Assembly: GCA_038496445.1 (NCBI GenBank)
Contig: JALMLS010000336.1
Span: 171,662 to 235,661 of the forward strand
DNA from: Trichosphaerium sp. ATCC 40318
Taxonomy: Eukaryota; Protista; Tubulinea
Length of the DNA stretch: 64,000 bases
Reading direction: 5' to 3'
Numbering within the stretch: position 1 is the first letter of the stretch; each line of letters opens with the position of its first letter. Shown one piece after another: positions 21,372 through 48,490 of the stretch. The notes beneath the pieces were generated by a model. The model made no database searches, was not told the origin of the DNA, and worked only from the letters and a program-made list of their open reading frames with translations. The translations under genes were made by a program, and so were the position numbers.

Positions 21372-23162
21372 TTAAAGAACATTGTTCTGTTTGGCTTTGA
21401 TGACTTTGATACGTTCCATCAAACTAAAACCAAGCTCTATTAACACACTTTTATCAATTTCATTAACTTTTGCGCCAACATCATTCATCAACTCTCCAAG
21501 TTCTTGTGCTCTTTCACTTTTAAAGCCCAACTTCATTAATATTAACTTCCAATCAGTCTCAACACTACCACTGGATTGGTTATCATGTAGCTGAGCGAAA
21601 CGTGTCTAAATAACTCTATTAATAAACGCACTACTGCAAAAGAATTAAACTTGTTAGAGATATGCCTTATTGATGTTGTCTGCAGAAATATGTGGTTTGT
21701 CCATCCATGATTGTTGCGGTACAACTCTGGCCAGGTTATCAGATGGCGAGCTTGTGTTTTTGTGCTTTTCATCAAGTATCTCACTGTGGTCTTGTAGTTC
21801 TTCAGACTATAATATCCATGAGTTGTATAGATTATTCAAGAGACGTACATCAGAGGAATATTCGTCGTGGTTTTGTTGTATTTCAAAAGTTTCAAGGGCG
21901 CTCTGAATCATGGCTAGATGTTCAGGAGCGTCTCCAAATTTAGTGTAATCATGATTGGGTTTAATAACAGACTTAGACCAGTACTTGTCTTTTGGGTCTT
22001 CCTTTAACTCTGTCCGCATCTCTTTCATATCATCTTTGGTTGACTAAATTATGAGTAAGAAAAAAAGAAAACAAAGAGTGTGTACCTGTTTGTAATTACT
22101 AAACTTCAACTTTTGTGGCTCTGATTGACCGCTCATATTGTTACCTGCTGTAAGCAGTCTGAAATCATGATAAATTGCCAAGGAATGAGTCTGTTTAATG
22201 GCAAAGTCGAGGTATTTTCCAGGTAGTTTTAATGGTTTGTTTGATTTGAATTCCTTGATCCATTTACCCCAACCCCAACCAAACAAACAACCATCACGAT
22301 CAATAGCGAAAGATGACCATGAACCAGCATGAATAGATACAATGTTATTGAGTCCTTTAATTATGCCCTTTCCATACTTGTCATCAAAGCCCAGCCCAAG
22401 ACACCCATGCCAGCTGTATCCAAAAGAAAATACTTGCTTTGACTTGGTAAGAACAAGCACGTGAAAAACGCCAATAGCAATATCTGTAGCATTAGAGATA
22501 CTTGGAACACATGTAATCATCTTTGGTTTCAAGAATAGTGATTTATTACTACTTTCACTATTCGTCTCATTGTTTTGTGTTGCTCCCCATAGAAGGACAT
22601 TTCCTGCTGAAGTTACTGCTCCACTCACAAAGAAATTTGTTTGAATCTTCACAACTTTTTCAAGATCTGGAACGAGCGTGGGGGAGAACACCTTACTCTT
22701 ATCATACGAATGACCTAGCCCATCGTATTCATTGCTTCCCCAAGAGTAGACATGACCTGATTTCGATAAAGCCATACTTATACCATAGGCAGTTACTTGA
22801 GTTATATCGGTCAAGTTTGGAACACGTGTTGGTTTCAAAACTGTCTTAACCAAGAGAGACTTAAAGTTACCTAAACCCAATTCACCCTTGTAATTACTTC
22901 CCCACGCGTAAACGATACCATTCGAATCAACTGCGAGACTGTGGTGCCATCCAGCAGCGATACAGACAATATTTCGTAGAGATTGTATCGGTCTAGCTAT
23001 AGAGTTCTTTTCCTTATCGTTAGGATTACCCAATTGGTAGTAATGATTATCACCCCACGTGTACACAAAGCCATCGTCTGCTATCACCATTGAATGGTAA
23101 AAACATACAGCCAAACGGTTAACATACTGTAAATTATCCTCTGAAGACTGGGGTTCAGCCAT
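21372..23162 (-). CDS. RCC1-repeat protein with C-terminal SAM-like domain
   Basis: RCC1 repeats (HSLAVDSNGIVYAWGSNYKGELGLG); spliced last exon ends LIELGFSLMERIKVIKA. Confidence 0.8.
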
Positions 23163-23575
23163 AAACTTGCGCAAATGGTTGGGTTTTGGGTACTAAAGCA
23201 ATTTGGAGGCAAATCCTAAATAGACCAAAAAAAAAACTGTGTTTGGGGTTTAGTTCGAAACAAATGCAGCTGAGTAGAGACATTAGGGCAATCAAATAGA
23301 ATAACAAAAGTTATTGTCTTTACGATCGACAGAAACTCGTGGAAAGCGAAAAATTGTGAGTAAGAATCATTAAATCCTCATAATGCTAAAGCAAGATTGA
23401 CATGCAGTTTTGATAGCTTACTGGTTAAATTATTGGAATAAATACTCCTTGCTCTAATTGAGTGATTGTTATTGCAACAAAGTATTGTAACAGAATCAAC
23501 AACGGGATTGTTTAGTATAATAATAACGCAAAGTACATCATGGAAAAAATGGCTAACTTCCAGGAGTTTATTGTT

Positions 23576-26500
23576 CTAAAGCAAGAATATGCATACAATG
23601 CACGCCACAACAAGGTATAGAGCTTTAATTGATGAACTAGAAGATTGCTGTATTGTATGATGAGCTTTTATAGGGAGCCAGTGCGTTTCTTAGAAAGAAG
23701 TTAGGAAACAATCTTAGTAATAAATTTCTTACCACCTCCAGCCACAAGGCCAGTCTTTTTCATAAACGCAACGATTGCCTTAGTTGCTTGGGCATCAAGT
23801 CTATCTATACCTTGGATGGTAACGGAAAAGTCTTGACCTTTTCCAACACGTGATACTGAAACATCATTGTTGCTCAAACCATATGCCTTTGACACTGCCG
23901 TACGAAGATCATTCGCTGCAGTGACAGGTACACGTGTTTGGAGAATACCACTTGGCTTCAAGTTGACTGTCATAGTTACGGGATCACTCTGCTGCTCTAG
24001 AGAAGAGTAGGTTAGATAACGCAACAGATTAAGTTACAGAGTCGAAAGATACTTACGCCTGAGAGAAAGCTGGTAGTTGATGACTTCAACACCTTTGTCT
24101 ATGTTGTTGCTATCACGAGGAGAAACGTAGCTAACGTGTAAGTAACTATCGGAATTACAACGATCAAGTTGCTCATATGTGAAGAAAGAAGAGTAAACTA
24201 GCGTCTCACAATCTCTTGCTACGACATTCCAAACCCTTTGAATATCTGAGTTAGACACGAATTTGAAAGTTACGCAAGACTACGATTACGAACCCTGGTT
24301 TAGGATATCCAGAGTAATCACCAGAGACAGCGCCTGGGAAAGTAGCATCAGGGGCATATAGCCATTTACGCTACAAACAAGTAAGTCCGCTTTTTATCAA
24401 AAAATGTTTGTACTGTATTGTGCTTTCCAATCTTAACATCGCTTTGTTCGAGAGATGATATACGGTTAGAACAAGGTGAAAGTCTATCAATGCCCTCAAA
24501 AGATTTTAAATCAATGATAGTAGTTCCCTTAGTGAAATATGGAACAGTGACAAACACCTTAATGCCTAAAAAAGAAAATAAACTTGGCGTCTTGTGGTAG
24601 CTAATAAACTGTACCTAGTCTTGATATATATGTTCTAGGAATAGGTTGAGGAAGATCAGGGAATGGCTTCAAGTCGCATATTCTTATTGGTTTATCACAG
24701 AATGGAGGTAAGTATCCCGGAGTACAAATACAACGACCACCAATGCATTGACCGTTCTTTGTATTGCAACCTTCAGTGCACTTTGCTGTTCAATCGTTAG
24801 CCAAGAAAGACAACATATTCACTTACCAATACTACAGTCGGGCCCAGCAAACCCAAGTAGGCATACACATCTTCCATTTATACATATACCACGCCCAGTA
24901 CATTTGTTCTTACACCCTTATTACAAATGAGCTTTAGGGTTAGATGAAATTTGTTTGTACGTACTAAAGTCAAAGAAACCATCTTGTTGAGCGAAGGCAA
25001 CATTTTGAGTATGAGCGACATCGAATATACATGCTTCTCGATCTTCATCATCTCTCACAAGACGACAAGCTTGGTTGGCAATTTCTGTCCCTAAAAGTAT
25101 GTGTCAAATACGAGAAGTTATGAAACCAAATGATGATGAGTCAAACAGTAATCGTACATTCTGGAAATGCTCCTTCGAGTGTCAATCCAATCAATCCTTT
25201 GAACTTTGGATCAATAACTGTTTCTTCAGCTGGTCTACAAGCCAATACTTCAGGTTCTCCTACTTCCAATCGGTCTTAAGGAAACGTAAGTCAACTGCTT
25301 TGCAAATGGGGAGTGTACATGATTCTGCAAATTCTTCGTGATGTACAATTGTTGTTGTTCCTTTCAATGTAAAGTCGTTTTCTGTATTATCATCCCATGT
25401 TCCGAGAAGACCTTCAGTCTTTCCATAAAAAGACCCTGGGAGAGTAGGTTCTGCATCCATCCAACAATCATTACCTCTGTTGTTAATAGTAATCTTCAAA
25501 GTAGCTCCTAAAACTCTCCAGTTAGAATCATATATGATTCAGTTGTAGGTGAAGCGCACCTGTTGTAAACGAAAAGAAGACGTAGTGTTTTCCATTTATT
25601 TGGTTTACCGAAACGGTAAATTCATCAAAGGTTGCAGTACGCTCGGAGATTGTATCTCTAAAGTTTATCTGATCGAAAAAACTAAAAAAATAAGTGAGAT
25701 AAGTTGTCCTTTAACGGCTTTGGACTTTCGTACGATTCTTGACAGTGTGAAACAACATCAAAACCGTAGCATACTTCACCATTTGTTAGTGCTTTGACAG
25801 CAACGAAAACATCATTTCCATCAATCTCATACCCCAATCCAATCTAAGAAACAAAATTAAAAGTCACGTGATAAAAACCAAAAAAACATTAATCACGTGA
25901 TCAAAAAAAACTGGTTTTCGAAGTGAATGAGAGTTCAGAGGATGTTGACGTACTTCATGGTTGACAGTAGCACTTGACCAAATGGCATTGTTTGCAGTTT
26001 TAGATTGAAGATAATATTTGTTGTGTTCTGAGATGACGAGATGGAAAGTACCCAATCCTTGGAAATGATGCCTTCTTCCATCAAAAGTTGTGTAGTGAGG
26101 ATCGCCCCATGAGAACGCACTACCAGGTAAGTTTGAAACATATGAGACATCGGATACACCTCCAAGAAGTAGGTTCTCCCAGATAAGTCTAAATGGAACA
26201 CCTGAAAGCTACCATTACAACTTAGATACAAAAACTACTTTTACCTCTATTCCAACATGGTGAAAGTAGATCGGAAGCAGCATGATGAAGAGCAACAGCG
26301 CGCTAAGTCAAAATTTAACCTTGCTTTTAACAATTAATTATTTCCTACCCAGTCAGATAGCCTGACAACAGGAGCCCCTGAGCTACCTTCTTCAGCGTCA
26401 CAATCGTATCCTCTAGTGGGCGCATAAGTTACAATATTTTGAGGTCATTGTAACAAAAAAACGTACACGTCATTGCCAATACCTCCTGTTGGGTTTGTTT

Positions 26501-27321
26501 CCGTAACAGACGTTATTTGACAACTGGTTCCTGAGTCGTTTTCGGCTGCGATTTCTCTTGCTCTTCCGTTTGGATATTGAGAAATGAAAAGAGGCTAGAG
26601 ACTTGACTTTAGCTTTAACTTGTTGTTTGTCTTCGCGTACGTCGCCAACAGAAGGATCTGTGATAGCTATAAGTTGGCCATTATATGTTTCCGCTGCGTT
26701 TCCAGGTAACTCAATGATAACGTAGTCAAGGCCAGCGTCTTGAGCAAGTATCTGGGTTTTTTTAACAATGGCGGTAAAAGAGCTTGATGTCTACTTACTT
26801 TTGCTCCTGTCGTCATCCAATTTGTGCAACCCATTGGTGTAGCATTTGGAAAGTTAATACTGGAACACATGGGTTGAGCGCATTCAAACTCATACGTTGC
26901 AGCAGCGACATCTGCATCTGTCGGTGCAGATCTTGTGAACAAATTAAGAATTTTTTTTGTGGTTTGGGTGAAACAACCCCTTTCTCACCCTTTACAAAAA
27001 GGATCTGACCAACAATTGTGGTTTGTTATTAGATGACCTTTACCACCTATCAACCAACCAGTACACGTGCAAAAGTCATCTGTAAATATTCGAGCAGCAA
27101 TACGGCTTCTGTTGAACAAACCCGTAGGACTAAAAAAGTTGGTTAAAAAAAAAGTTGAGAAGACCCAATTCAAATCGCAGTTTTTAATATCTTATCGGGT
27201 ACCTCGCAGTATCGAAGCATGCAGCGTTCTCTAGTTGATTAGTACCACATATCTGTTCATTATGAGCGCTTACGCTTATCGACAACGCTGAGAATACAAC
27301 AAGTAGTAAGATAAAGCGCAT
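23576..27321 (-). CDS. Secreted trypsin-like peptidase-vWD-EGF GPI-anchored protein, copy 1 (divergent, inverted)
   Basis: Signal peptide; triad ITNHNC / LDY / [11 protein letters not shown]; [11 protein letters not shown]; GLLGTWDDN; EGF repeats; hydrophobic C-terminus. Confidence 0.85.
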
Positions 27322-35741: not shown

Positions 35742-38700
35742 ATGCGTTTTCTTGTTCTTCTCGCTGTATTATCAGCGCTATCGATAACTGTTAGCGGTAA
35801 TAATGAAGAAATATGTGGTAATAGTCAACTATCAAACGCCATTTGCTTCAATACTGCGAGGTAAGCTAAAACAACTATTTTCCGTAATACTTAGCTTCGT
35901 GTTCTTAACGAAATCTTGTTAGTACAACGGACCTTTTTGATAGAAGTCTGATTACTGCACGTATTATTACAAGTCAAGGTTGTGCTTGTACTGGATGGCT
36001 TATTGGAGACCGTGGCGATTTCATAACGAATCACCATTGTTGGTCTAATTTTCTTTGCAAGGGGTTTGTACTTTGTTACTTTCTCTCATTTTTACTGACC
36101 CGTCTTTCTTAGGTCTGCTGCGAATAATGCAGATGTTGCTGCTGCAAGTTATGAGTTCAGTTGCCATCAACCTACTTGCGGTAGTGCTAATCCAGCAGGA
36201 TCTGTTCCAGCTGCTTGTACTACATGGGCTTCCGCAGGAGCAACTGTACGCTTTAGAAACATGTTTAACATTCAAGTCAAAATTTGATAGTTTTTTGACT
36301 TTTGTCGTGTAGATTATTGACCAAGACGCCGGATTGGATTACGTACTTATTAACTTACCTGGTAACGCCGCTTTAACTTACAACGGACAATTGATATCAA
36401 CAAACGTAAACGTTGGAGAAGTGCGTAGAAAGTCGAGGACGTTATGTTCGACTAACCAATGTTAGCAAATCTTTATTTCTCAGCATCCAGCTCGTCGCGC
36501 TAGAGAGATTTCGAATGTTAACGATGCTGGAACTAGAGTTAGTGTTCAATCTGTAAACGAAATTAATGTGATGGGTGGCGCTGCTGCAATGTACGCCAAC
36601 GTGACGATTAAACCTCCTTTAACACTGCTAGTGGCTATGATGCTGATACTGAAGGCGGAAGCTCGGGCTCTCCAGTTGTGAGAAGAGCAGATTGGGTACT
36701 GACTATACTATGATAAGTTCGATTATTAACTTTTTAAATAGCGTGCTGTTGCTATCCACCATGCCAGGTCAAACCAAAACAACCCGTGCTGGAACAGAGG
36801 TACACCTGCAAATGATACAATACAGCTAAATATGCTTCTAGGTATTCCAATGTGGCGTATTAGAAACCTTCTTGATTCTAGAGGAGTGAACACTGCCAAT
36901 TATTTAAGTGACTTAGCTGGTGGCGCTTTTGCGTGGGGCGACCCTCATTACACAACTTTCGATGGAAGAAAGCATCATTTCCAAGGATTGGGTACTTTCC
37001 ATCTCGTCATCTCAGAACACAACAAATATTATCTTCAATCTAAAACTGCAAACAATGCCATTTGGCCAAGTGCTACTGTCAACCATGAAGTACGTTATCA
37101 TCACTGATCCTTCTTACTCAGCCACAAGAACCTTTTTTTTTTTATTGATTTATCACGTGATTTTTTTTTTGAATTTTATCACGTGATTTTTAATTTTGTT
37201 TGTTAGATTGGATTGGGATATGAGATTGATGGAAATGATGTTTTTGTTGCTGTCAAGGCAATCAAAGATGGTGAAGTATGCTATGGTTTTGATGTTATTC
37301 ATCAATGTGAAAAGTCGTAAGTTACCTCTTGTATGATGTCGCAAAAACTCACTTTCTTTTTAGTTTATTCGACCAAATATACTTCAGTCAAACCATTTCG
37401 GCAAGGACTGTGACAAGAGATGGATTCACTGCCACTGTAAATCAAGCCAATGGCAAACATTATGTATTTTTCAGATTCACAACAGGTAGCCTCCATTCTT
37501 TGAGTAGATGACGAACTAATGTACTTTGTAGGAGCAACAATGAAGATAACAATAAATCATAGAGATAATGATTGTTGGATGAATGTTGAACCAAAGGTTC
37601 CTGGTTCGTTTTATGGACGCACTGAAGGTCTTCTCGGAACATGGGATGATAATACAAACAATGATTACACAAAGAAAGGAACAACAACAATCGTACCTCA
37701 TGCTGAATTTGCTGAATCATGTACACTATTTTTCACTTGTTTAACTTTCAGTTACTTAATGCTTATTTAGACCGATTGGAGAAAGGAGAACCAAATGTAT
37801 TGGCTTGCAAAACAGCTGAAGAGACATTTATTGATCCAAAGTTCAAAGGATTGATTGGATTGACACTCGAAGGCGCCAACCAAGAGTGTACATAACTTTT
37901 TCTTACTCAACACTTTTCCTAATACTGTTACAGGGATTGATGTTGCCAATCAAGCATGTCGTCGTGTGAGAGATGAAGAAGATAGAAAAGCATGTATATT
38001 TGATGTCGCTCATACTCAAAATGTTGAATTTGCTCAACAAGACATTCTAATAAACACAAGTACGTCGTTTGGATAATAGAAAGGAAGGACTCGCTTTTGA
38101 CATTGTGGCTTAGGATGTCCTAATAATTGTAACGGTCGCGGTTTCTGTATTCAAGGAAGATGTAATTGTTTACTTGGATTTTCTGGACCAGATTGTAGTG
38201 AAAGTACGTGAACAGTTTTTCTTTGGAACCTTATAATTGTTAGTTGCCGAATGTCCAAATTGTAACAAAGAGACTGGTTTTTGTGTTGCTGGACGTTGTG
38301 TATGTCGTCCAGGATACTTGCCACCTAATTGTGATAAACGTATAACAATATGTGACTTGAAACCATTCCCTGATCTTCCAGAACCTATTGTCACTTCAAT
38401 ACCCGTCAGAGGAGGTACTACCCTTTACTTCACAATGTGACTTGTGTTTACAGAATCCTAGGAATCAAGGTGTTTGTCACTGTTCCATACTTCACCAAGG
38501 GAACCACAATTCTTGATTTTAAACCTTTTGAAAAACTTGAGAGCCTTTCTGATTGTGCCAATCGTTTCGCTTCAAACCCTCTTGAAGTCGATTCTAAAAA
38601 TGAAGTACGTATAATAGTTTATCACTTCTGGCATCTAATAAATGTCATAGCCAAAATGGGAGTATGCACCTGACGCAACATACCCAGGAGCTGTATCAGG

Positions 38701-39438
38701 AGACTTTGCTGGATACCAACACTCACAGTACGTAACACCTGTACTTTTTGAACACTTAAGCTAATAAATAACTTTAGGCGTTGGAATGTTGTTCCAAGAA
38801 ATTGTCGTACTTTGTACTACTCTGCATTCTTTGATGAACAAACATTGGAACGTTGTAGATTCGAAGGAAGTATATACGTTAACTATGCATCTCCTGTTGA
38901 TAGTGGCAACATTAACAAAGGTTTTGATATCAAAGACTTCAAGATGAGTGTTGAACGTAAGTATCAACAATTAAGTAAGCAAAAAGATTGCATTCTAACA
39001 CCTTTGTTTAGCTAAGCAACAAGATCCAACACAACTAACAATCAACTTGTCACCAAAGGGTATTCTTCAATCACGTGTACCTGCTACTGCAGCGGATAAT
39101 CTTCGTACTGCTGTATCAAAGGCATATGCTGTAAGTCCAAATGATGTATCTGTCACTGTTGGTAAAGGAAACGACTTCCATGTATCAGTTGATGGCGCCA
39201 CACATGTTGAAGCAGGAGCTACAGAGTATATTATCTTATTGATGAGTAATCATGGATTGAAAGTAGACAGTGGTGCGCAACCAAAACATATTGGTATACA
39301 GTGATGCTTACTAACAATTGCTTTTTAGGATCACACTTCCTCACAGTCTCAGATACCCATACTGTTCAATCAAGCGCTACTACAACGTCATATGCTATAC
39401 TCATATTGATGATGGTATTGATAGCTTCATTGTTGTAG
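35742..39438 (+). CDS. Trypsin-like peptidase-vWD-EGF GPI-anchored protein, copy 2
   Basis: MRFLVLLAVL signal; ITNHHC / LDY / DTEGGSSGSPV; GDPH at 36937-36948; EGF repeats (CPNNCNGRG); GPI-like end SSATTTSYAILILMMVLIASLL*. Confidence 0.9.
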
Positions 39439-40223
39439 TTCAAATAAAGTCAACACGTTTTACTTTGTTAACATGTAACTTCTTGAAGTAAAAGCCACTG
39501 TACTCAAGTAATGCAAGTTTGATTGCTGCATAGTGTCCTCGATATTTAAAATGCAGCAATAAGTTTTACGGATTCTGCAAAGGGCTGATTACAAGTTGTT
39601 TGGGTAGTTTAGATTCAAACAAAAATTGCATAATAGGCGCTCAAAAACAAGCCATAACAAAAAACCAGGAAACTTCTAAAGCAAATTGATAACGGGTTGG
39701 TTGTACTGTTACATGACAGCATGGCGTTATAAAAATATGCAGCCAGGTGCAAGTCCGAGTGGCTTGCCAAACACAAAGGATCTGTGAATGTTCATGAATG
39801 CATATTCGCGGTTTTGGGTACCCGAATAAAGATGTCTTGTACGTACTTACAAAATCCTCAAGGGTGTCTTTTTCGGTGGTTGAGAACAAGGAAAGAATAG
39901 GTACTTCCATACCCAACTTGCCATTCGCTTAAAGCTTGTGAATCGTTATCTTTGGATAGAGTTGACCCAATGATTTCCAAGCGTTCAACTTGGGTGTAGT
40001 GGTCTTATTAGTATCGTCTCACATCCATTTCACTGCTTTCTTGTCAAAATGTAAAAAACCCCGCCACACATAAGAGAGCGCTACAAGTGCAATATATACA
40101 TCGCGCAGATCACGTGTTTAATCACATGAGTCAAATAATATTTACTGAACCACGCACAAAAAGGAGCGAGCCATTTTATAATCACAGCCTTTTAACTAGC
40201 GCAACACTTAACGACACATTAGG

Positions 40224-43200
40224 ATGCGTTTTCTTGTTCTTCTCGCTGCGTTATCAGCGCTATCGATAACTGTTAGCGGTAATAATGAAGAAATATGTGG
40301 TAATAGTCAATTTACGAACGCCATTTGCTTCAATACTGCGAGGTAAGCTAAAACAACTATTTTCCGTAATACTTAGCTTCGTGTTCTTAACGAATTATCT
40401 TGTTAGTACAACGGACGTTTTCGATAGAAGTCTGATTACTGCACGTATTATTACAAGTCAAGGTTGTGCTTGTACTGGATGGCTTATTGGAGACCGTGGT
40501 GATTTCATAACGAATCACCATTGTTGGTCTGATGGTCTCTGCAAAGGGTTCGTATTCCTTCTACTTTTATATTTCATATCTAACGAAGCCTTTAGGTCTG
40601 CTGCGAGTAATGCAGACGTTGCTGCTGCAAGCTACGAGTTCAATTGTCACCAACCTACTTGTCTTAGTGCCAACCCATCAGGATCTACTCCAGCTGCTTG
40701 TACTGTATGGGGATCCGCAGGAGCAACTGTACGTTTGGGAAAACTGGTTCGAATTCAGAACTTGCTGACTTTCTTTGTTGGCATAGATCATTGACCAAGA
40801 TGCAGGCTTAGATTACGTACTTATTAACTTACCTGGTAACGCTGCTTTAACTTACAACGGACAATTGATATCAACAAACGTAAACGTTGGAGAAGTGCGT
40901 GGGAAGAAATACGTTGAGTATCTACTTACAAATATATAGCAAATCTTTATTTCTCAGCACCCAAGACGTCGTGCTAGAGAGATTTCGAATGTTAACGATG
41001 CTGGAACTAGAGTCAGTGTTCAATCTGTAAACGAAGTTAATTTCATGGGTGGCGCTGCAGCAATGTACGACAACTGTGACAAGTAAACCTCCTGTAACAT
41101 TTCTAGTGGTTATGATGCTGATACTGAAGGCGGAAGCTCGGGCTCTCCAGTTGTGAGAAGAGCAGATTGGGTACTGACTATACTATGATAAGTTCGATTA
41201 TTAACTTTTTAAATAGCGTGCTGTTGCTATCCACCATGCCAGGTCAAACGCAGCTAATCCACAATGTTGGAATAGAGGTATAAAAATACAGTTTTACTTA
41301 CTTCAGCTAAGTATGCTTGCTTAGGTGTTCCAATGTGGCGTATTAGAAACCTTCTTGATTCTAGAGGAGTAAACACTGCCAATTATTTAAGTGACTTAGC
41401 TGGCGGTGCTTTGGCGTGGGGCGACCCTCATTACACAACTTTTGATGGAAGAAAGCATCATTTCCAAGGATTGGGTACTTTCCATCTCGTCATCTCAGAA
41501 CACAACAAATATTATCTTCAATCTAAAACTGCAAACAATGCCATTTGGCCAAGTGCTACTGTCAACCATGAAGTACGTTAACATCGCTGAACTCATTCAC
41601 TTTGAAAAACAAAACCATTTTTTTTGATCACGTGATTTTTTTTTTTTGGTTTTTATCACGTGACTTTTAATTTTGTTTGTTAGATTGGATTGGGATATGA
41701 GATTGATGGAAATGATGTTTTTGTTGCTGTCAAGGCAATCAAAGATGGTGAAGTATGCTACGGTTTTGATGTTATTCATCAGTGTGAAAAGTCGTATGTT
41801 GTTATGTGAAAGATGTCTCACTCATTTTTTCATTTAGTTTGTTCGACCAAATATACTTCAGTCAAACCATTTCGGCAAGAACTGTGACAAGAGATGGATT
41901 CACTGCCACTGTCAATCAAGCAAATGGCAAACATTATGTATTTTTCAGATTCACAACAGGTATTTATTCTGATTCAATTGTGCTGAGCTAATGTACTTTG
42001 TAGGAGCAACAATGAAGATAACAATAAATCATAGAGATAATGATTGTTGGATGAATGTTGAACCAAAGGTTCCTGGTTCGTTTTATGGACGTACTGAAGG
42101 TCTTCTCGGAACGTGGGATGATAATACAAACAATGATTACACAAAGAAAGGAACAACAACAATCGTACCCCATGCTGAATTTGCTGAATCATGTACACAC
42201 TATTTTTCCTTGTTTAACTTTCTGTTACTTAATGCTTATTTAGACCGATTGGAGAAAGGAGAACCAAATGTATTGGCTTGCAAAACAGCTGAAGAGACAT
42301 TTATTGATCCAAAGTTCAAAGGATTGATTGGATTGACACTCGAAGGCGCCAACCAAGAGTGTACGTAACTTTTTCTTACTCAACACTTTTCCTAATACTA
42401 CTTACAGGGATTGATGTTGCCAATCAAGCATGTCGCCGTGTGAGAGATGAAGAAGATAGAAAAGCATGTATATTTGATGTCGCTCATACTCAAAATGTTG
42501 AATTTGCTCAACAAGACATTCTAATAAATACAAGTAAGTTTGCAAGAAGGAATGACTTGTAGTTGATATTTACTTAGGATGTCCTGATAATTGTAATGGA
42601 CGTGGTTTCTGTATTCAAGGAAGATGCAATTGTTTACTTGGATTTTCTGGACCTGATTGTAGTGAAAGTACGTGAAGTGTCTTTTGTGTGAAACTAACGA
42701 ATTGTTAGCTGAATGTACTAATTGTAACAAAGAGACTGGTTATTGTGTTGCTGGACGTTGTGTATGTCGTCCGGGATACTTACCACCAAATTGTGATAAA
42801 CGTATAACAATATGTGACTTGAAACCATTCCCTGATCTTCCAGAACCTATTGTCACTTCAACTTATGTCAAAGGAGGTACTTACCTTTGCTTCACAATGT
42901 GACTTGCGTTTACCGAATACCAGGTATCAAGGTGTTTGTCACTGTTCCATACTTCACCAAGGGAACCACAATTCTTGATTTCAAACCTTTTGAAAAGCTT
43001 GAAAGCCTTTCCGATTGTGCCAATCGTTTCGCTTCAAACCCTCTTGAAGTCGATTCTAAAAATGATGTACGTTTTGGTTGTACCCGTACAGAAACTAACA
43101 ATATTTTAGCTCAGATGGGAGTATGCACCTGATGCCACATATCCAGGAGCTGTATCAGGAGACTTTGCTGGATACCAACACTCACAGTACGTAACACCTG

Positions 43201-43916
43201 TACTTTTAGTAGCCACAGCTGTACCATGTATGAACACCAAAGCTAATATGAATAACTTCAGGCGTTGGAATGTTGTTCCAAGAAATTGTCGTACTTTGTA
43301 CTACTCTGCATTCTTTGATGAACAAACATTGGAACGTTGTAGATTCGAAGGAAGTATATACGTTAACTACGCATCTCCTGTTGATAGTGGCAACATTAAC
43401 AAAGGTTTTGATATCAAAGACTTCAAGATGAGCGTTGAACGTAAGTATCAACAACAAGCGGCTTGTATTCTAACAACTTTGTTTAGCTAAACAACAAGAT
43501 CCAACACAACTAACAATCAACTTGTCACCAAAGGGTATTCTTCAATCACGTGTACCTGCCACTGCAGCGGATAATCTTCGTACTGCTGTATCAAAGGCAT
43601 ATGCTGTAAGTCCAAATGATGTATCTGTCACTGTTGGTAAAGGAAACGACTTCCATGTATCAGTTGACGGCACCTCACATGTTGAAGCTACAGCTACAGA
43701 GTATATCATATTATTAATACTGAGTAATCATGGATTGAAAGTAGACAGTGGTACGCAACCTAACATGAATCTGGTATACTGAGTCTTACTGATAATTGCT
43801 TTTTAGGATCACACTTCTTCACAGTCTCAGATACCCATACTGTTCAATCAAGCGCTACTACAAACTCATATGCTATACTCATATTCATGATGGTATTGAT
43901 AGCTTCATTGTTGTAA
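40224..43916 (+). CDS. Trypsin-like peptidase-vWD-EGF GPI-anchored protein, copy 3
   Basis: Same exon structure and motifs as copy 2; tandem direct duplicate. Confidence 0.9.
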
Positions 43917-44749
43917 CTCTCAAATAAATTCTACATCACACAAGTTCCTTTGCTTACACTATAGCAATGTATTGTTTTTGCAAAAAAGCCTAGTCTTTGT
44001 TCGTTCTTTACCAACACTTCTACAACAAAGTTGTTTAATAAACTATGGATAAGGTATTCAGGGTATTTCGCAAGACAGAAGCCAACAAGTTGCATTTATT
44101 TCGTTTGTGGATCATTACCAGGTTAAAAAGGTTCACAGATTTCAGTATGTGTCTTTAGTCAAAAGACAATACGAGAAGGATCATAGTAGAAACACTTACA
44201 CAACAGTCCACGATACTCACGTCCAGTTCCTAATGCGAGTTTTAAATCCGAATATTTTAGGATTCAGTGAAGTAGTTTTAATGGTTTTTTTTTTGAAAAA
44301 TGTTTAACACAAGCTTGGATTTTCGTGGCATGTGAACTCTTGTCGGGTTTGAGCATTCTCGATATTCCTACAGGACAATAATTTATCAGCTAATGTGCTA
44401 AGGGTAACAATCCAATGGACGCAAAAGTTAAGTATGAACCCCTTCTCAACAAAAACACGAGGCTGACTAGCCGTGTACAAGACAAATAAGCGTACTTCCG
44501 TTACCCGACCTGTATTCACCAAACATTTGTGAGTCTTAAACTCTTGACGATATTCACCCAATAGAATACATAAGGTGCGTTGAATAAAAACGAGATTTTG
44601 CGCAAGAAAAAAAAGGCAACACGTGAATGTTGCTTATTTGCAGGCAATAATTCGTAAAAAAAGAAGAACGGGGTGAAATGTGACTCGCATTTAGTACACA
44701 GTTGGCTATCAAAGTTGTTAAATCCAAACAACTAGCGCAACTATTCAGA

Positions 44750-47700
44750 ATGCGCTCTTTCTTACTGCTAGTTGTATTATCAGTGCTTACTATAGGCGTA
44801 ACTGGTAGTAGCGAGGAAATATGTGGTACCAGTCAACTGACTAACGCCATATGCTTCAATACTCTCAGGTAAGCCATACATAGCACTGAGTTAGAATTTT
44901 CCTTCTGACATTCTTCGTCTTAGCAACTCGGACCTTTTTGATAGAAGTTACATCGCTGCGCGTGTAACAACTGCTCAAGGTTGTTCATGTACTGGATGGC
45001 TTATTGGAGATATGGGACATTTTATTACGAACCACCATTGTTGGTCTAGTTTTGGTTGCAAAGGGTTTGTAGTACTTTGTGCTTTATTTATCTAACGAAC
45101 TTCTTAGGTCAGCAGCGACTAATGCAGACGTTGCTGCTGCAACGTACGAATTCTTTTGCCATCAGCTCACTTGTGCTGCTGCAAATCCAGCTGGATCTAC
45201 TCCAGCTTCTTGTACTACATGGGGAGCTGCAGGAGCAACTGTACGTGTAAATAGTTTAAAGAGTATTGTTATTGACTTTCTTCATTGACACAGATCATTG
45301 ACCAAGACGCTGGATTAGATTACGTACTTATTGACCTGCCTGGTAATCCCGCTCTTACATACAACGGACAATTGATTGCGACCAATGCAAACATTGGCGA
45401 AGTGCGTATAGCTACGCTAAGATACCTAACTAAACATCAACAGCAAATTGTTATTTCTCAGCACCCACGTGCTCGTGCCAGAGAGATTTCGCACGTCAAT
45501 GACGCAGGAAACAGATGTAGCGTTCAATCCGTTACAGAAGTCAATGTTATGGGTGGTGGCGCAGCAATGTACGATGGGTGATTAAGAGTTTTTCAAATAC
45601 ACTAATACTATGTTGCAGCGGCTATGATTGCGACACAGAAGGCGGCAGCTCAGGCTCTCCAGTTGTGAGAAGAACTGACTGGGTAATACGCTTTAACAGG
45701 ATTTCTATTTTACTAATTAATTAAATCATAAAGCGTGCCGTTGCTATTCATCATGCTAGATCCGACCCAGCCAATCCATCATGTTGGAACAGAGGCACTC
45801 AAACATCACACTATTTTATAAACTAAACAGCTACTAGGTGTTCCAATGTTTCGTATTAGAAACCTTCTTGATTCGAGAGGCATCAATACGATAGGATACT
45901 TGACTAATGCTCCGGGTGGTGGACTCTCATGGGGCGATCCTCATTATACAACTTTTGATGGAAGAAGGCATCATTTCCAAGGATTGGGTACTTTCCATCT
46001 CGTCATCTCAGAACACAACAAGTTTTATCTTCAATCTAAAACTGCAAATAATGCCATTTGGCCAAGTGCGACTGTTAACCACGAAGTACGTTATCCTCCT
46101 TTGAAATCTCATTCACTTCGAAACAAATCCTGTTTTTTTATCAAACCACGTGTTTTTTTTTCTGTTGTATGCGATTTTTTTGTCACGTGATTGACTTTGT
46201 TTTTCACGTGATTTTTGAAAGTTGTTATTAGATTGGATTGGGATATGAGATTGATGGAAATGATGTTTTTGTTGCTGTCAAGGCAATCAAAGATGGTGAA
46301 GTATGCTACGGTTTTGATGTTATTCATCAATGTGAAAAGTCGTAAGTTACCTCTTGTATGATGTCGCAAAAACTCACTTTCTTTTCTTTTTAGTTTGTTC
46401 GACCAAATATACTTCAGTCAAACCATTTCGGCAAGGACTGTGACAAGAGATGGATTCACTGCCACTGTCAATCAAGCAAATGGCAAACATTATGTATTTT
46501 TCAGATTCACAACAGGTATTTATTCTCAAGATTGTGCTGAGCTAATGTACTTTGTAGGAGCAACAATGAAGATAACAATAAATCATAGAGATAATGATTG
46601 TTGGATGAATGTTGAACCAAAGGTTCCTGGTTCGTTTTATGGACGTACTGAAGGTCTTCTCGGGACATGGGATGATAATAGAAATAATGACTACACAAAG
46701 AAAGGAACAACAACAATCGTACCTCATGCTGAATTTGCTGAATCATGTACACACTATTTTTCCTTGTTTAACTTTGTGTTACTTAATGCTCATTTAGACC
46801 GATTGGAGAAAGGAGAACCAAATGTATTGGCTTGTAGACCAGCGAAAGAAACATTTATTGATCCAAAGTTCAAAGGATTGATTGGGTTGACGCTCGAAGG
46901 AGCTAATCCAGAATGTACGATAAAGAGTAGTCATCACAGTACTCAACTATTTCCCTAATACTGCTTACAGGGATTGATGTTGCCAACCAAGCATGCCGTC
47001 GTGTGAGAGATGAAGAAGATAGAAAAGCATGTATATTCGATGTCGCTCATACTCAAAATGTTGAATTTGCTCAACAAGACATTCTAATAAATACAAGTAA
47101 GTTTGCAAGAAGGAATGACTTGTTGATAATTGTGACTTAGGATGTCCTAATAATTGTAATGGACGTGGTTTCTGTATTCAAGGAAGATGCAATTGTTTAC
47201 TTGGATTTTCTGGACCAGATTGTAGTGAAAGTACGTGAACTCATATCTTTTGTGCAGAAACTAATGAATTTTTAGCTGAATGTACTGATTGTAACAAAGA
47301 TGGTGGGTACTGTGTTGCTGGACGTTGTGTTTGTCGTCCAGGATTCTTGCCACCAAATTGTGATAAACGTATAACAATATGTGACTTGAAACCATTCCCT
47401 GATCTTCCAGAACCTATTGTCACTTCAATACCCGTCAGAGGAGGTACTGCCACTTTCATTCTTGTTTGCTTCACAATGTGACTTGTGTTTACCGAATACT
47501 AGGTATCAAGGTGTTTGTCACTGTTCCATACTTCACCAAGGGAACCACAATTCTTGATTTCAAACCTTTTGAAAAGCTTGAGAGTCTTTCTGATTGTGCC
47601 AATCGCTTTGCTTCAAACCCTCTTGAAGTCGATTCTAAAAATGATGTACGTAAATCGTTAATCACTTACAGTATCTAATCAATTTCACAGCCAAGATGGG

Positions 47701-48490
47701 AGTATGCACCTGATGCCACATATCCAGGAGCTGTATCAGGAGACTTTGCTGGATACCAACACTCACAGTACGTAACACCACAGTACCACACTGTACCATT
47801 ATGAACACCAACGCTAATATGAATAACTTTAGGCGTTGGAATGTTGTTCCAAGAAATTGTCGTACTTTGTACTACTCTGCATTCTTTGATGAACAAACAT
47901 TGGAACGTTGTAGATTCGAAGGAAGTATATACGTTAACTATGCATCTCCTGTTGATAGTGGCAACATTAACAAAGGTTTTGATATCAAAGACTTCAAGAT
48001 GAGCGTTGAACGTAAGTATCAACAACAAGCGGCTTGTATTCTAACAACTTTATTTAGCTAAACAACAAGATCCAACACAACTAACAATCAACTTGTCACC
48101 AAAGGGTATTCTTCAATCACGTGTACCTGCTACTGCAGCGGATACTCTTCGTACTGCTGTATCAAAAGCATATGCTGTAAGTCCAAATGATGTATCTGTC
48201 ACTGTTGGTAAAGGAAACGACTTCCATGTATCAGTTGATGGCACCACACATGTTGAAGCAGGAGCTACAGAGTATATCATATTATTGATGAGTAATCATG
48301 GACTGAAAGTAGATAGTGGTGCGCAACCAAACGCGAACATATTGTATTCAGTGTGCTAATAACAATTGCTTTAGGATCACACTTCCTCACAGTCTCAGAT
48401 ACCCATACTGTTCAATCAAGTGCTACGACAAACTCATTTGCAGTATTCACCTTGATGATAATATTGATAGCTTATAGCTTGTTGTTGTAA
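44750..48490 (+). CDS. Trypsin-like peptidase-vWD-EGF GPI-anchored protein, copy 4
   Basis: Same architecture; the model needs a GC-AG intron at 45795-45837. Confidence 0.85.

Follow-up and report, generated by a model that had tools for sequence, protein, structure and literature searches.

It is well known that vWD domains carrying a GDPH motif can cleave themselves, as in mucins, RGM and FCGBP; RGM is, in addition, GPI-anchored. The heavy chains of inter-alpha-inhibitor also end at a cut site of the type ...D/PH, and the C-terminal Asp exposed by that cut then forms an ester with a glycan. Membrane proteases sitting on a self-cutting stalk are likewise known from animals, with matriptase and enteropeptidase as examples, the stalk module being a SEA domain in both. 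The purpose of GDPH-vWD self-cleavage itself is still described as unknown (PMC10880436).

We analysed a gene family of the amoeba Trichosphaerium sp. ATCC 40318 in which a GDPH-vWD follows a protease. The predicted protein consists, in order, of a signal peptide, a serine protease, a GDPH-vWD, a Cys-poor C8-like segment, two EGF domains, about 250 further residues and a GPI-type tail. We think it fairly probable that these are lipid-anchored surface serine proteases, in which a Trypsin_2 head devoid of a pro-region sits on a eukaryotic-type GDPH-vWD stalk that would most likely cut itself during secretion.

The family comprises eight loci in the genome. In the stretch of 64,000 nucleotides analysed here (the window, to which all positions refer), three direct copies stand in tandem on the plus strand with a spacing of about 4.5 kb, namely copy 1 (35742-39438; 20 exons, 896 aa), copy 2 (40224-43916; 890 aa, intact) and copy 3 (44750-48490; 891 aa provided that intron 7 uses a GC donor at 45795), and an inverted copy with an intact frame of 896 aa occupies 23576-27321 on the minus strand. 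The other four are found elsewhere, on C90 (roughly 30 kb upstream from the window), on C35, on C67 and, in a diverged form, on C19. Nucleotide identity among the direct copies ranges from 57 to 99% over the transcribed unit (250-nt windows). The window alignment and the gene models confirm the three direct copies and the divergent inverted one announced by the original prediction, whose start and stop coordinates match the curated models exactly. PF00094 matches in the genome are confined to these eight loci, and the set hit by the exon-2 peptide is identical, the vWD and this protease head always occurring together.

Exon models were curated manually and projected onto the paralogs, splicing being predicted from GT-AG rules, the reading frame, what the paralogs conserve and a collinear alignment with the bacterial homologs, which have no introns. 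The curated GT-AG model of copy 1 is open in frame to the stop, with its exons on the plus strand at 35742-35860, 35923-36042, 36113-36245, 36313-36420, 36466-36590, 36632-36695, 36742-36799, 36842-37089, 37207-37316, 37364-37485, 37532-37720, 37771-37887, 37934-38059, 38114-38203, 38244-38414, 38462-38604, 38651-38727, 38778-38956, 39012-39293 and 39329-39438; copy 2, projected from it, has no internal stops. Seven of the eight paralogs could be modelled end to end, each with an unbroken ORF of 887-902 aa in 19-20 exons; their introns are of GT-AG type and 30-146 nt long, the exception being intron 7 of copy 3, whose donor is GC and not GT. The string TSFNTAS, earlier read as protein, was rejected as out-of-frame sequence within a 41-nt intron; TPANDTIQLNMLLG, part of the earlier reading frame, is assigned here to an in-frame 42-nt intron.

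The protein of copy 1 starts with a 19-aa signal peptide (35742-35798, plus strand), whose hydrophobic core has a mean Kyte-Doolittle hydropathy of 2.8, followed by the protease head (residues ~20-255; 35799-36880, plus strand, introns included). An HMM was built locally from the seven joined heads; three bacterial genes scoring above the Pfam Trypsin_2 cut-off match it over its full length at 114-134 bits, and the 120 best further homologs match it at about 100-155 bits, over HMM positions 2-231 and beyond. The head and its homologs are 32-38% identical over 220-240 residues, and their triad residues align. Taken singly, the amoeba exons reach 15.6-17.5 bits against Trypsin_2 in Pfam, below the cut-off of 27.6. 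Judging from the full-length profile matches, the head is a full-length member of the large, mainly bacterial Trypsin_2 family (PF13365), also present in Phytophthora and counting roughly 1,900 homologs. This agrees with the bacterial/oomycete type first proposed for it; the glutamyl-endopeptidase-type enzymes named at the same time give weak sequence matches to the family profile (V8, Spl and exfoliative-toxin type chains, E 0.03-0.9). NCBIfam returned a single chance-level match on the protease fragments, and the other Trypsin_2-like genes of this genome include no close relative of the head (best 12 bits).

The fold was approached through a bacterial proxy, whose AlphaFold2 model (pLDDT 93.6) has 1arb and 4nsy as its top Foldseek matches (E 3e-11), the glutamyl endopeptidase group ranking below Lys-C. 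All its top Foldseek matches are S1 proteases, and the chymotrypsin-type double β-barrel is seen for this proxy only. PDB sequence searches with the exons, the bacterial proxy and the family profile gave no match to 1arb or 4nsy, and those with exon pieces and the bacterial proxy gave nothing usable. Bacterial members carry an N-terminal pro-region of 125-185 aa before the same Cys-loop start, whereas the mature start of the amoeba heads lies directly after the signal peptide, at the point where the bacterial catalytic domain begins in the alignment; the lack of an evident propeptide, already noticed at first reading, is thus borne out. As for the source of the head, a 133-row mixture-model tree places the amoeba clade beside the metagenomic protein P0268 (SH-aLRT 100), and in a 48-row LG+G4 tree it groups with Phytophthora instead (support 90); the two trees do not agree.

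The stalk would be made up of the GDPH-vWD, the C8-like segment, the two EGF domains, an unassigned region, a membrane-adjacent ferredoxin-like module and a GPI anchor. In copy 1, all on the plus strand, the 3-Cys segment between vWD and EGFs (37771-38059) bears a weak likeness to MUC4 C8-3 (PF23263, C8-3_MUC4, 18.5 bits, below the cut-off of 25), and the EGF domains (38114-38414) are of the teneurin/tenascin type (PF23106, 35.9 bits; PF07974, 29.3 bits). The exons of the C-terminal region of ~250 aa (38462-39293) have no Pfam match. Its last 93 aa, next to the membrane and encoded by exon 19 (39012-39293), are predicted to adopt a β-α-β-β-α-β ferredoxin-like fold (AlphaFold2 pLDDT 83.6), with top TM-scores of 0.6-0.66 to the membrane-proximal ectodomain of IA-2/phogrin, the fold being a generic one. 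With regard to SEA, this generic ferredoxin-like fold reaches Z 6-7 with many unrelated families; a GSVV-type SEA motif was not found between β2 and β3 of exon 19. In the GPI-type signal (39329-39438), small residues (QSSA) are followed, after a short polar spacer, by 14-15 hydrophobic residues up to the stop. This pattern is kept in all seven modelled paralogs despite their sequence divergence (their last 15 residues have a mean hydropathy of 2.2-3.1), and the C-terminus of the diverged C19 copy is hydrophobic in a similar way. Genes for the GPI transamidase subunits Gaa1 and Gpi16 are present in the genome; GPI anchoring of these proteins is predicted from the heuristic tail pattern. The signal peptide, the EGF repeats, a C-terminal domain of no recognisable family and a GPI-type tail had all been read from the sequence beforehand, and all are found in the models.

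The vWD of copy 1 (residues ~270-465; 36922-37720, plus strand) extends over exons 8-11, with the N- and C-terminal parts of PF00094 in separate exons: positions 3-35, opened by GDPH, score 33.6 bits, above the cut-off, and positions 118-153 score 23.4 bits in a later exon. The motif G275-D276-P277-H278 is encoded at 36937-36948 (plus strand), and the predicted scissile bond falls between codons 36940-36942 and 36943-36945. The GDPH stretch, including the Gln at D+14, is invariant in all eight paralogs; in FCGBP, mutagenesis tied the Asp, the His and the Gln at D+14 to Asp-Pro self-cleavage (PMC10880436). That GDPH opens a vWD domain, as originally proposed, therefore stands, with all the FCGBP cleavage residues retained. 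The Asp276-Pro277 bond would most likely be self-cut during secretion, as in other GDPH-vWD proteins. Such cleavage is cited at the slightly acidic pH found in the Golgi and secretory granules, and in the ER even at a pH close to neutral (PMC10880436), so an acidic phagosome is not needed as a trigger, and the suggestion that it plays this part is not supported as it was put. The product would be a two-chain molecule, its protease head ending in strand β1 of the vWD sheet.

What would then hold the head in place is a matter of cysteines. Between residue 239 and GDPH, none of the eight paralogs has a Cys; Ala or Gly stands at the β1 site where mucin-type vWDs and the environmental relative P0071 carry Cys, and the FCGBP-type β1 disulfide is absent. 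With no Cys in β1, the head of a cut molecule would be held by non-covalent contacts only and could come off; it has been pointed out that, in vWDs lacking the β1 Cys, cleavage could in principle fragment the protein (PMC10880436). Both points speak against a permanently tethered protease, an alternative that we regard as possible but rather unlikely: GDPH would remain uncut, or be cut only to stabilise the vWD, and the head, kept by tight non-covalent contacts or by a disulfide of the odd Cys, would do its work on the cell surface, with prey envelopes or matrix as examples of what it might attack. This alternative draws on the nine invariant Cys of the N-terminal fragment, an odd number that makes another tether (disulfide or dimer bond) possible, and on two precedents. 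The self-cut of FCGBP raises stability and protease resistance and frees nothing. In matriptase, the fragments of the self-cut SEA stalk stay tightly bound, and shedding takes a further cut (PMC5567652); given this, the original prediction went further than the evidence in equating autoproteolysis with shedding.

A bolder version of release, which we consider unlikely, would make the self-cutting vWD a one-shot latch: after Asp-Pro scission, the pro-region-less head would hang by a single β-strand and could then be left behind on prey or in the phagosome or, more radically, be covalently transferred to a target. If matters went as in inter-alpha-inhibitor, the transfer would plant an active protease on the target surface via the new C-terminal Asp.

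Whether the heads are enzymes at all bears on the favoured reading, that of surface serine proteases cut during secretion. In seven of the eight paralogs, His, Asp and Ser occupy the invariant catalytic columns of the family, together with the GGSSGSP motif; in copy 1, these are His78 (codon 36035-36037), Asp133 (codon 36337-36339) and Ser213 (codon 36663-36665), on the plus strand. An intact triad had been announced for the inverted copy as well as for the three direct ones, and it is found in the latter only: the inverted copy has Asn (NHNC) in the invariant catalytic-His column (codon 27015-27017) and, with its catalytic His replaced, is probably a pseudo-protease, judging from the alignment. 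Its head is nevertheless under purifying selection (dN/dS 0.12), and this, along with heads that diverge on homogenised stalks, would suit adhesion or recognition receptors in which binding, and not catalysis, is the main task of the protease-like head; set against the catalytic residues and motif retained by the seven others, we find such a role improbable.

Among the seven modelled paralogs, every structured domain has a dN/dS of 0.02-0.4, and values above 0.4 occur only in the linker of the inverted copy and in some GPI tails; by these ratios, the family is maintained by purifying selection. Between copies 1 and 3, dS amounts to 0.89 in the head and to 0.10-0.32 from the vWD to the C-terminal region; the array copies share 90-99% identity in parts of their 3' half, and their intergenic spacers do not align. 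Read from these divergence values, the tandem array is one whose stalks are homogenised by gene conversion and whose heads diverge. That the array is functionless, either as duplicated DNA in decay or as an artefact of assembly, for which the GC donor of copy 3 might be invoked, is extremely improbable in the face of seven intact ORFs of 887-902 aa over 19-20 exons, dN/dS well under 1 and copies that differ by 1-40% and are spread over four contigs.

Outside this genome, the junction between head and vWD is hard to find. In searches from both of its ends, one outside sequence was seen to span it, a 109-aa environmental metagenome fragment, and those searches found no other full-length protein uniting the head with a GDPH-vWD; none of the best 120 head homologs has a vWD. 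Word searches returned nothing, either for the junction exon or for the read-through of exons 2-3 in a 169-aa ORF, nor did a JGI metagenome scan with the junction-exon alignment or a viral-contig scan with the exon-2 alignment, and ESM Atlas, queried with the junction exon, matched the vWD part only. An architecture that was not recognised at first sight appears, on these searches, to be rare indeed.

The fragment freed by cleavage would here be an enzyme, and the β1 disulfide usual in vWD is missing; GDPH cleavage would thereby gain a testable read-out in a simple organism, namely proteolytic activity released or retained. In this family, too, a type of protease that is mainly bacterial has become part of a eukaryotic surface protein, has acquired introns and has multiplied to eight copies. 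Diverging heads on homogenised stalks are a pattern typical of molecules meeting variable targets such as prey.

When compared with described systems, the head is homologous over its full length to the bacterial and oomycete Trypsin_2 proteins (L028 from an Acidobacteria MAG, P0268 and the Phytophthora 'serine protease V8' P0199), whose relatives are named 'trypsin-like peptidase', 'lysyl endopeptidase' or 'V8-like' in their sources. Common to both sides are the N-terminal Cys loop and the motifs CTGWL.G...TN.HC, LDY, Y.ADT.GGSSGSPV and NRGVP. Tails on the bacterial proteins include fn3, CUB and CBM31 plus a T9SS sorting domain; the amoeba genes differ from them in the 6-7 introns of the head and in the lack of a pro-region. 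Lysyl endopeptidases (Achromobacter protease I, 1arb; Lysobacter Lys-C, 4nsy) match the fold of the bacterial proxy over the whole chain (TM 0.61-0.65), a fold-level match only, at about 20% identity. On the stalk side, RGM and MUC4/SUSD2 are likewise membrane-attached and carry GDPH in the β1-β2 turn of their vWD; MUC4 is cut there into two subunits, and the order found here, with a weakly C8-3_MUC4-like segment and EGFs after the vWD, is MUC4-like. MUC4/SUSD2 differ in that NIDO and AMOP were not found by Pfam on any amoeba exon and a protease takes the N-terminal place; RGM differs in that, on the same exons, RGM_C reaches 11.4 bits against a cut-off of 27 and RGM_N was not found. In the amoeba proteins, unlike in all of these, the N-terminal fragment is predicted to be an enzyme. 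The logic is that of the matriptase-type proteases with a SEA stalk, that is, a tethered serine protease, a self-cutting stalk and chains held non-covalently, but matriptase is a type II transmembrane protein with a C-terminal S1A protease, zymogen activation and no GPI anchor. Its self-cutting module is SEA (Gly-Ser), that of the amoeba proteins would be vWD (Asp-Pro), and the two systems are not homologous.

The gene family is real, conserved and multi-copy. Repeat analysis of the window bore out the three direct copies expected by the original prediction (35742-39438, 40224-43916 and 44750-48490, + strand; copies 1 to 3), spaced by about 4.5 kb, and the single inverted copy (23576-27321, − strand), in DNA of eukaryotic character (38% GC, with numerous short GT-AG introns). 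In the 70 Mb assembly, in which the window occupies positions 171662-235661 of contig C90, an exon DNA search and an exon-2 peptide search agree on all eight loci: four in the window, one upstream of it on the same contig (C90), and one on each of the contigs C35, C67, and C19. Pfam VWD matches in a whole-genome search are confined to these eight loci; the N-terminal protease domain (head) and the vWD are, thus, always found together in this genome. The inverted copy adjoins a 376-aa ORF with RCC1-like repeats (22044-23174, −).

In the model of copy 1, hand-curated from sequence, 19 introns (35-117 nt each) separate 20 predicted exons, with GTA.. prevailing among donors and TAG among acceptors and a frame open as far as the stop at 39436-39438. 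With this model projected onto the paralogs, seven copies have an intact ORF, 887-902 aa long; the C19 paralog, outside these seven end-to-end models, is collinear and 40-59% identical. Two stretches first read as protein turned out to be intronic: “TSFNTAS” is an out-of-frame reading within a 41-nt intron (36591-36631) whose borders agree in six paralogs, and the other is the in-frame 42-nt intron 7 (36800-36841), whose residues have no counterpart in the C67 and C19 paralogs, in the environmental protein P0071, or in bacterial homologs. Six paralogs have intron 7 and the C67 and C19 copies do not (L010:2149-2457 and L020:1908-2222), therefore an intron was gained or lost inside one gene family. 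In copy 3, the donor of intron 7 (45795-45841) is GC (GCACTC), not GT; should splicing fail to remove it, translation would stop at a TAA (45824-45826) shortly after the protease domain, and the product would be a stalkless secreted head.

Pfam, large-search, and fold queries were single exons or contiguous references, while joined proteins were analysed by local scripts. The resulting order is a 19-aa N-terminal signal peptide; the head (about residues 20-255); a 20-aa linker between head and VWD; the vWD, opened by the 11-residue GDPH stretch (Pfam VWD, 33.6 bits; its C-terminal part matches from a later exon); a three-Cys segment that resembles C8-3_MUC4 below the Pfam threshold; two teneurin/tenascin-type EGFs; a C-terminal region of about 250 aa that matches nothing in Pfam; and a GPI-type tail made of small residues, a short spacer, and 14-15 hydrophobic residues up to the stop. 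The vWD, the EGFs, and the unrecognised C-terminal domain were, thus, correctly anticipated, and so was the tail on a heuristic reading: its pattern is retained in all seven modelled copies although sequence identity is low, and the C19 tail is similar. Genes for the GPI transamidase subunits Gaa1 and Gpi16 are present in the genome. The last large exon is predicted with good confidence to form a β-α-β-β-α-β module (pLDDT 83.6) with top TM-scores to the IA-2/phogrin membrane-proximal ectodomain, a fold class too common for family naming.

Queried against Pfam as single exons, the head gave collinear Trypsin_2 matches below the cut-off around the His and the Ser, and an S46-like match at TNHHC. 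Scanning bacterial genomes with the exon-2 alignment yielded three intron-free genes (Bacteroidales, Acidobacteria, and Xanthomonadaceae MAGs), all of which pass the Trypsin_2 cut-off and match, over their full length and at 114-134 bits, a local HMM built from seven joined heads; the Bacteroidales gene also carries CBM31 and a T9SS tail. The Acidobacteria protein, used as a proxy query, has 1,894 homologs. The best 120 all score about 100-155 bits against the head HMM; those with a source name are mostly bacterial MAGs, largely Acidobacteriota, and four are Phytophthora proteins. Partner domains listed among these 120 include fn3, CUB, and cohesin, and none carries VWD. The head of copy 1 is 32-38% identical to its relatives across 220-240 residues, with the N-terminal Cys loop, His-Cys, LDY, GGSSGSPV, and NRGVP aligned, so that the bacterial/oomycete Trypsin_2 resemblance noticed at the outset extends to the full length. 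The Phytophthora proteins (P0199, P0223, P0226, and P0263) have two tandem catalytic domains each, and one has a CUB. Bacterial members have 125-185 residues ahead of the Cys loop, which in the protist proteins directly follows the signal peptide; this comparison supports the claim that there is no propeptide. As modelled by AlphaFold2 (pLDDT 93.6), the proxy is structurally nearest to Achromobacter protease I and Lysobacter Lys-C (E 3e-11, TM 0.61-0.65, 20% identity), followed by HtrA-type, Spl, V8, and exfoliative-toxin-type proteases, and the family profile matches V8-group and S46 sequences of the PDB weakly. The neighbours of the protist heads differ between two trees.

The catalytic triad had been described as intact in every copy. 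The His column, invariant across 50 family members, is indeed His in the other seven paralogs (N[HEQ]HC) but Asn in the inverted copy (NHNC, codon 27015-27017, −), which makes the latter a candidate pseudo-protease despite its intact frame and a head dN/dS of 0.12. Each structured domain has a dN/dS of 0.02-0.4, exceeded solely in the 24-residue linker of the inverted copy (0.77-0.87) and some GPI tails. A comparison of copies 1 and 3 gives a dS of 0.89 for the head versus 0.10-0.32 from the vWD through the C-terminal region; stretches of the 3′ half are as much as 93-99% identical at the nucleotide level with introns counted, and the intergenic spacers do not align. Together, these values indicate gene conversion of the stalk (GDPH-vWD to tail), with older, diverging heads.

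When 1.84 billion representative proteins were scanned in full by HMMER, the junction exon had 259 matches; among the best 150, 149 are vWD-only and P0071 alone also covers the protease part. This 109-aa ORF from a 554-nt metagenome contig (L011, ENA ERZ795039; singleton cluster) is the only outside sequence found spanning the protease end and GDPH. Such rarity is not proof of absence, since the query included 14 intron-coded residues, the best 150 of 259 and best 120 of 1,894 matches were considered, and the sampling of protist genomes is sparse. Literature searches found no description of a protease combined with a GDPH-vWD; the individual modules and the general logic are already known.

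In FCGBP, GDPH sits in the β1-β2 turn, and cleavage requires its Asp and His and is helped by a Gln at Asp+14 (PMC10880436). All three residues are invariant in the eight paralogs, and we consider it rather likely that GDPH is cleaved. Where a vWD lacks the β1 disulfide, the cut might in theory split the protein into separate pieces (PMC10880436). No copy has a Cys between residue 239 and GDPH, and the paralogs have Ala or Gly at a site where typical vWDs and P0071 have Cys; the intron-free P0071 junction has a Cys, lacking in all eight paralogs, immediately before WGDPH. Nine Cys, and thus an odd number, are invariant in the N-terminal fragment. A further pair, Cys185 and Cys206, covaries: five paralogs have both, and copies 1 and 2 have Val and Ala instead (exons 36466-36590 and 36632-36695 in copy 1, same positions in copy 2), a coordinated loss of a probable disulfide. 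Regulated release of an active head is a more tentative proposal, somewhat doubtful on balance, and the self-release originally proposed is plausible, unproven, and testable. Points against simple release are the odd Cys number and the behaviour of matriptase, in which the self-cut SEA stalk remains tightly associated and a second cut is needed for shedding.
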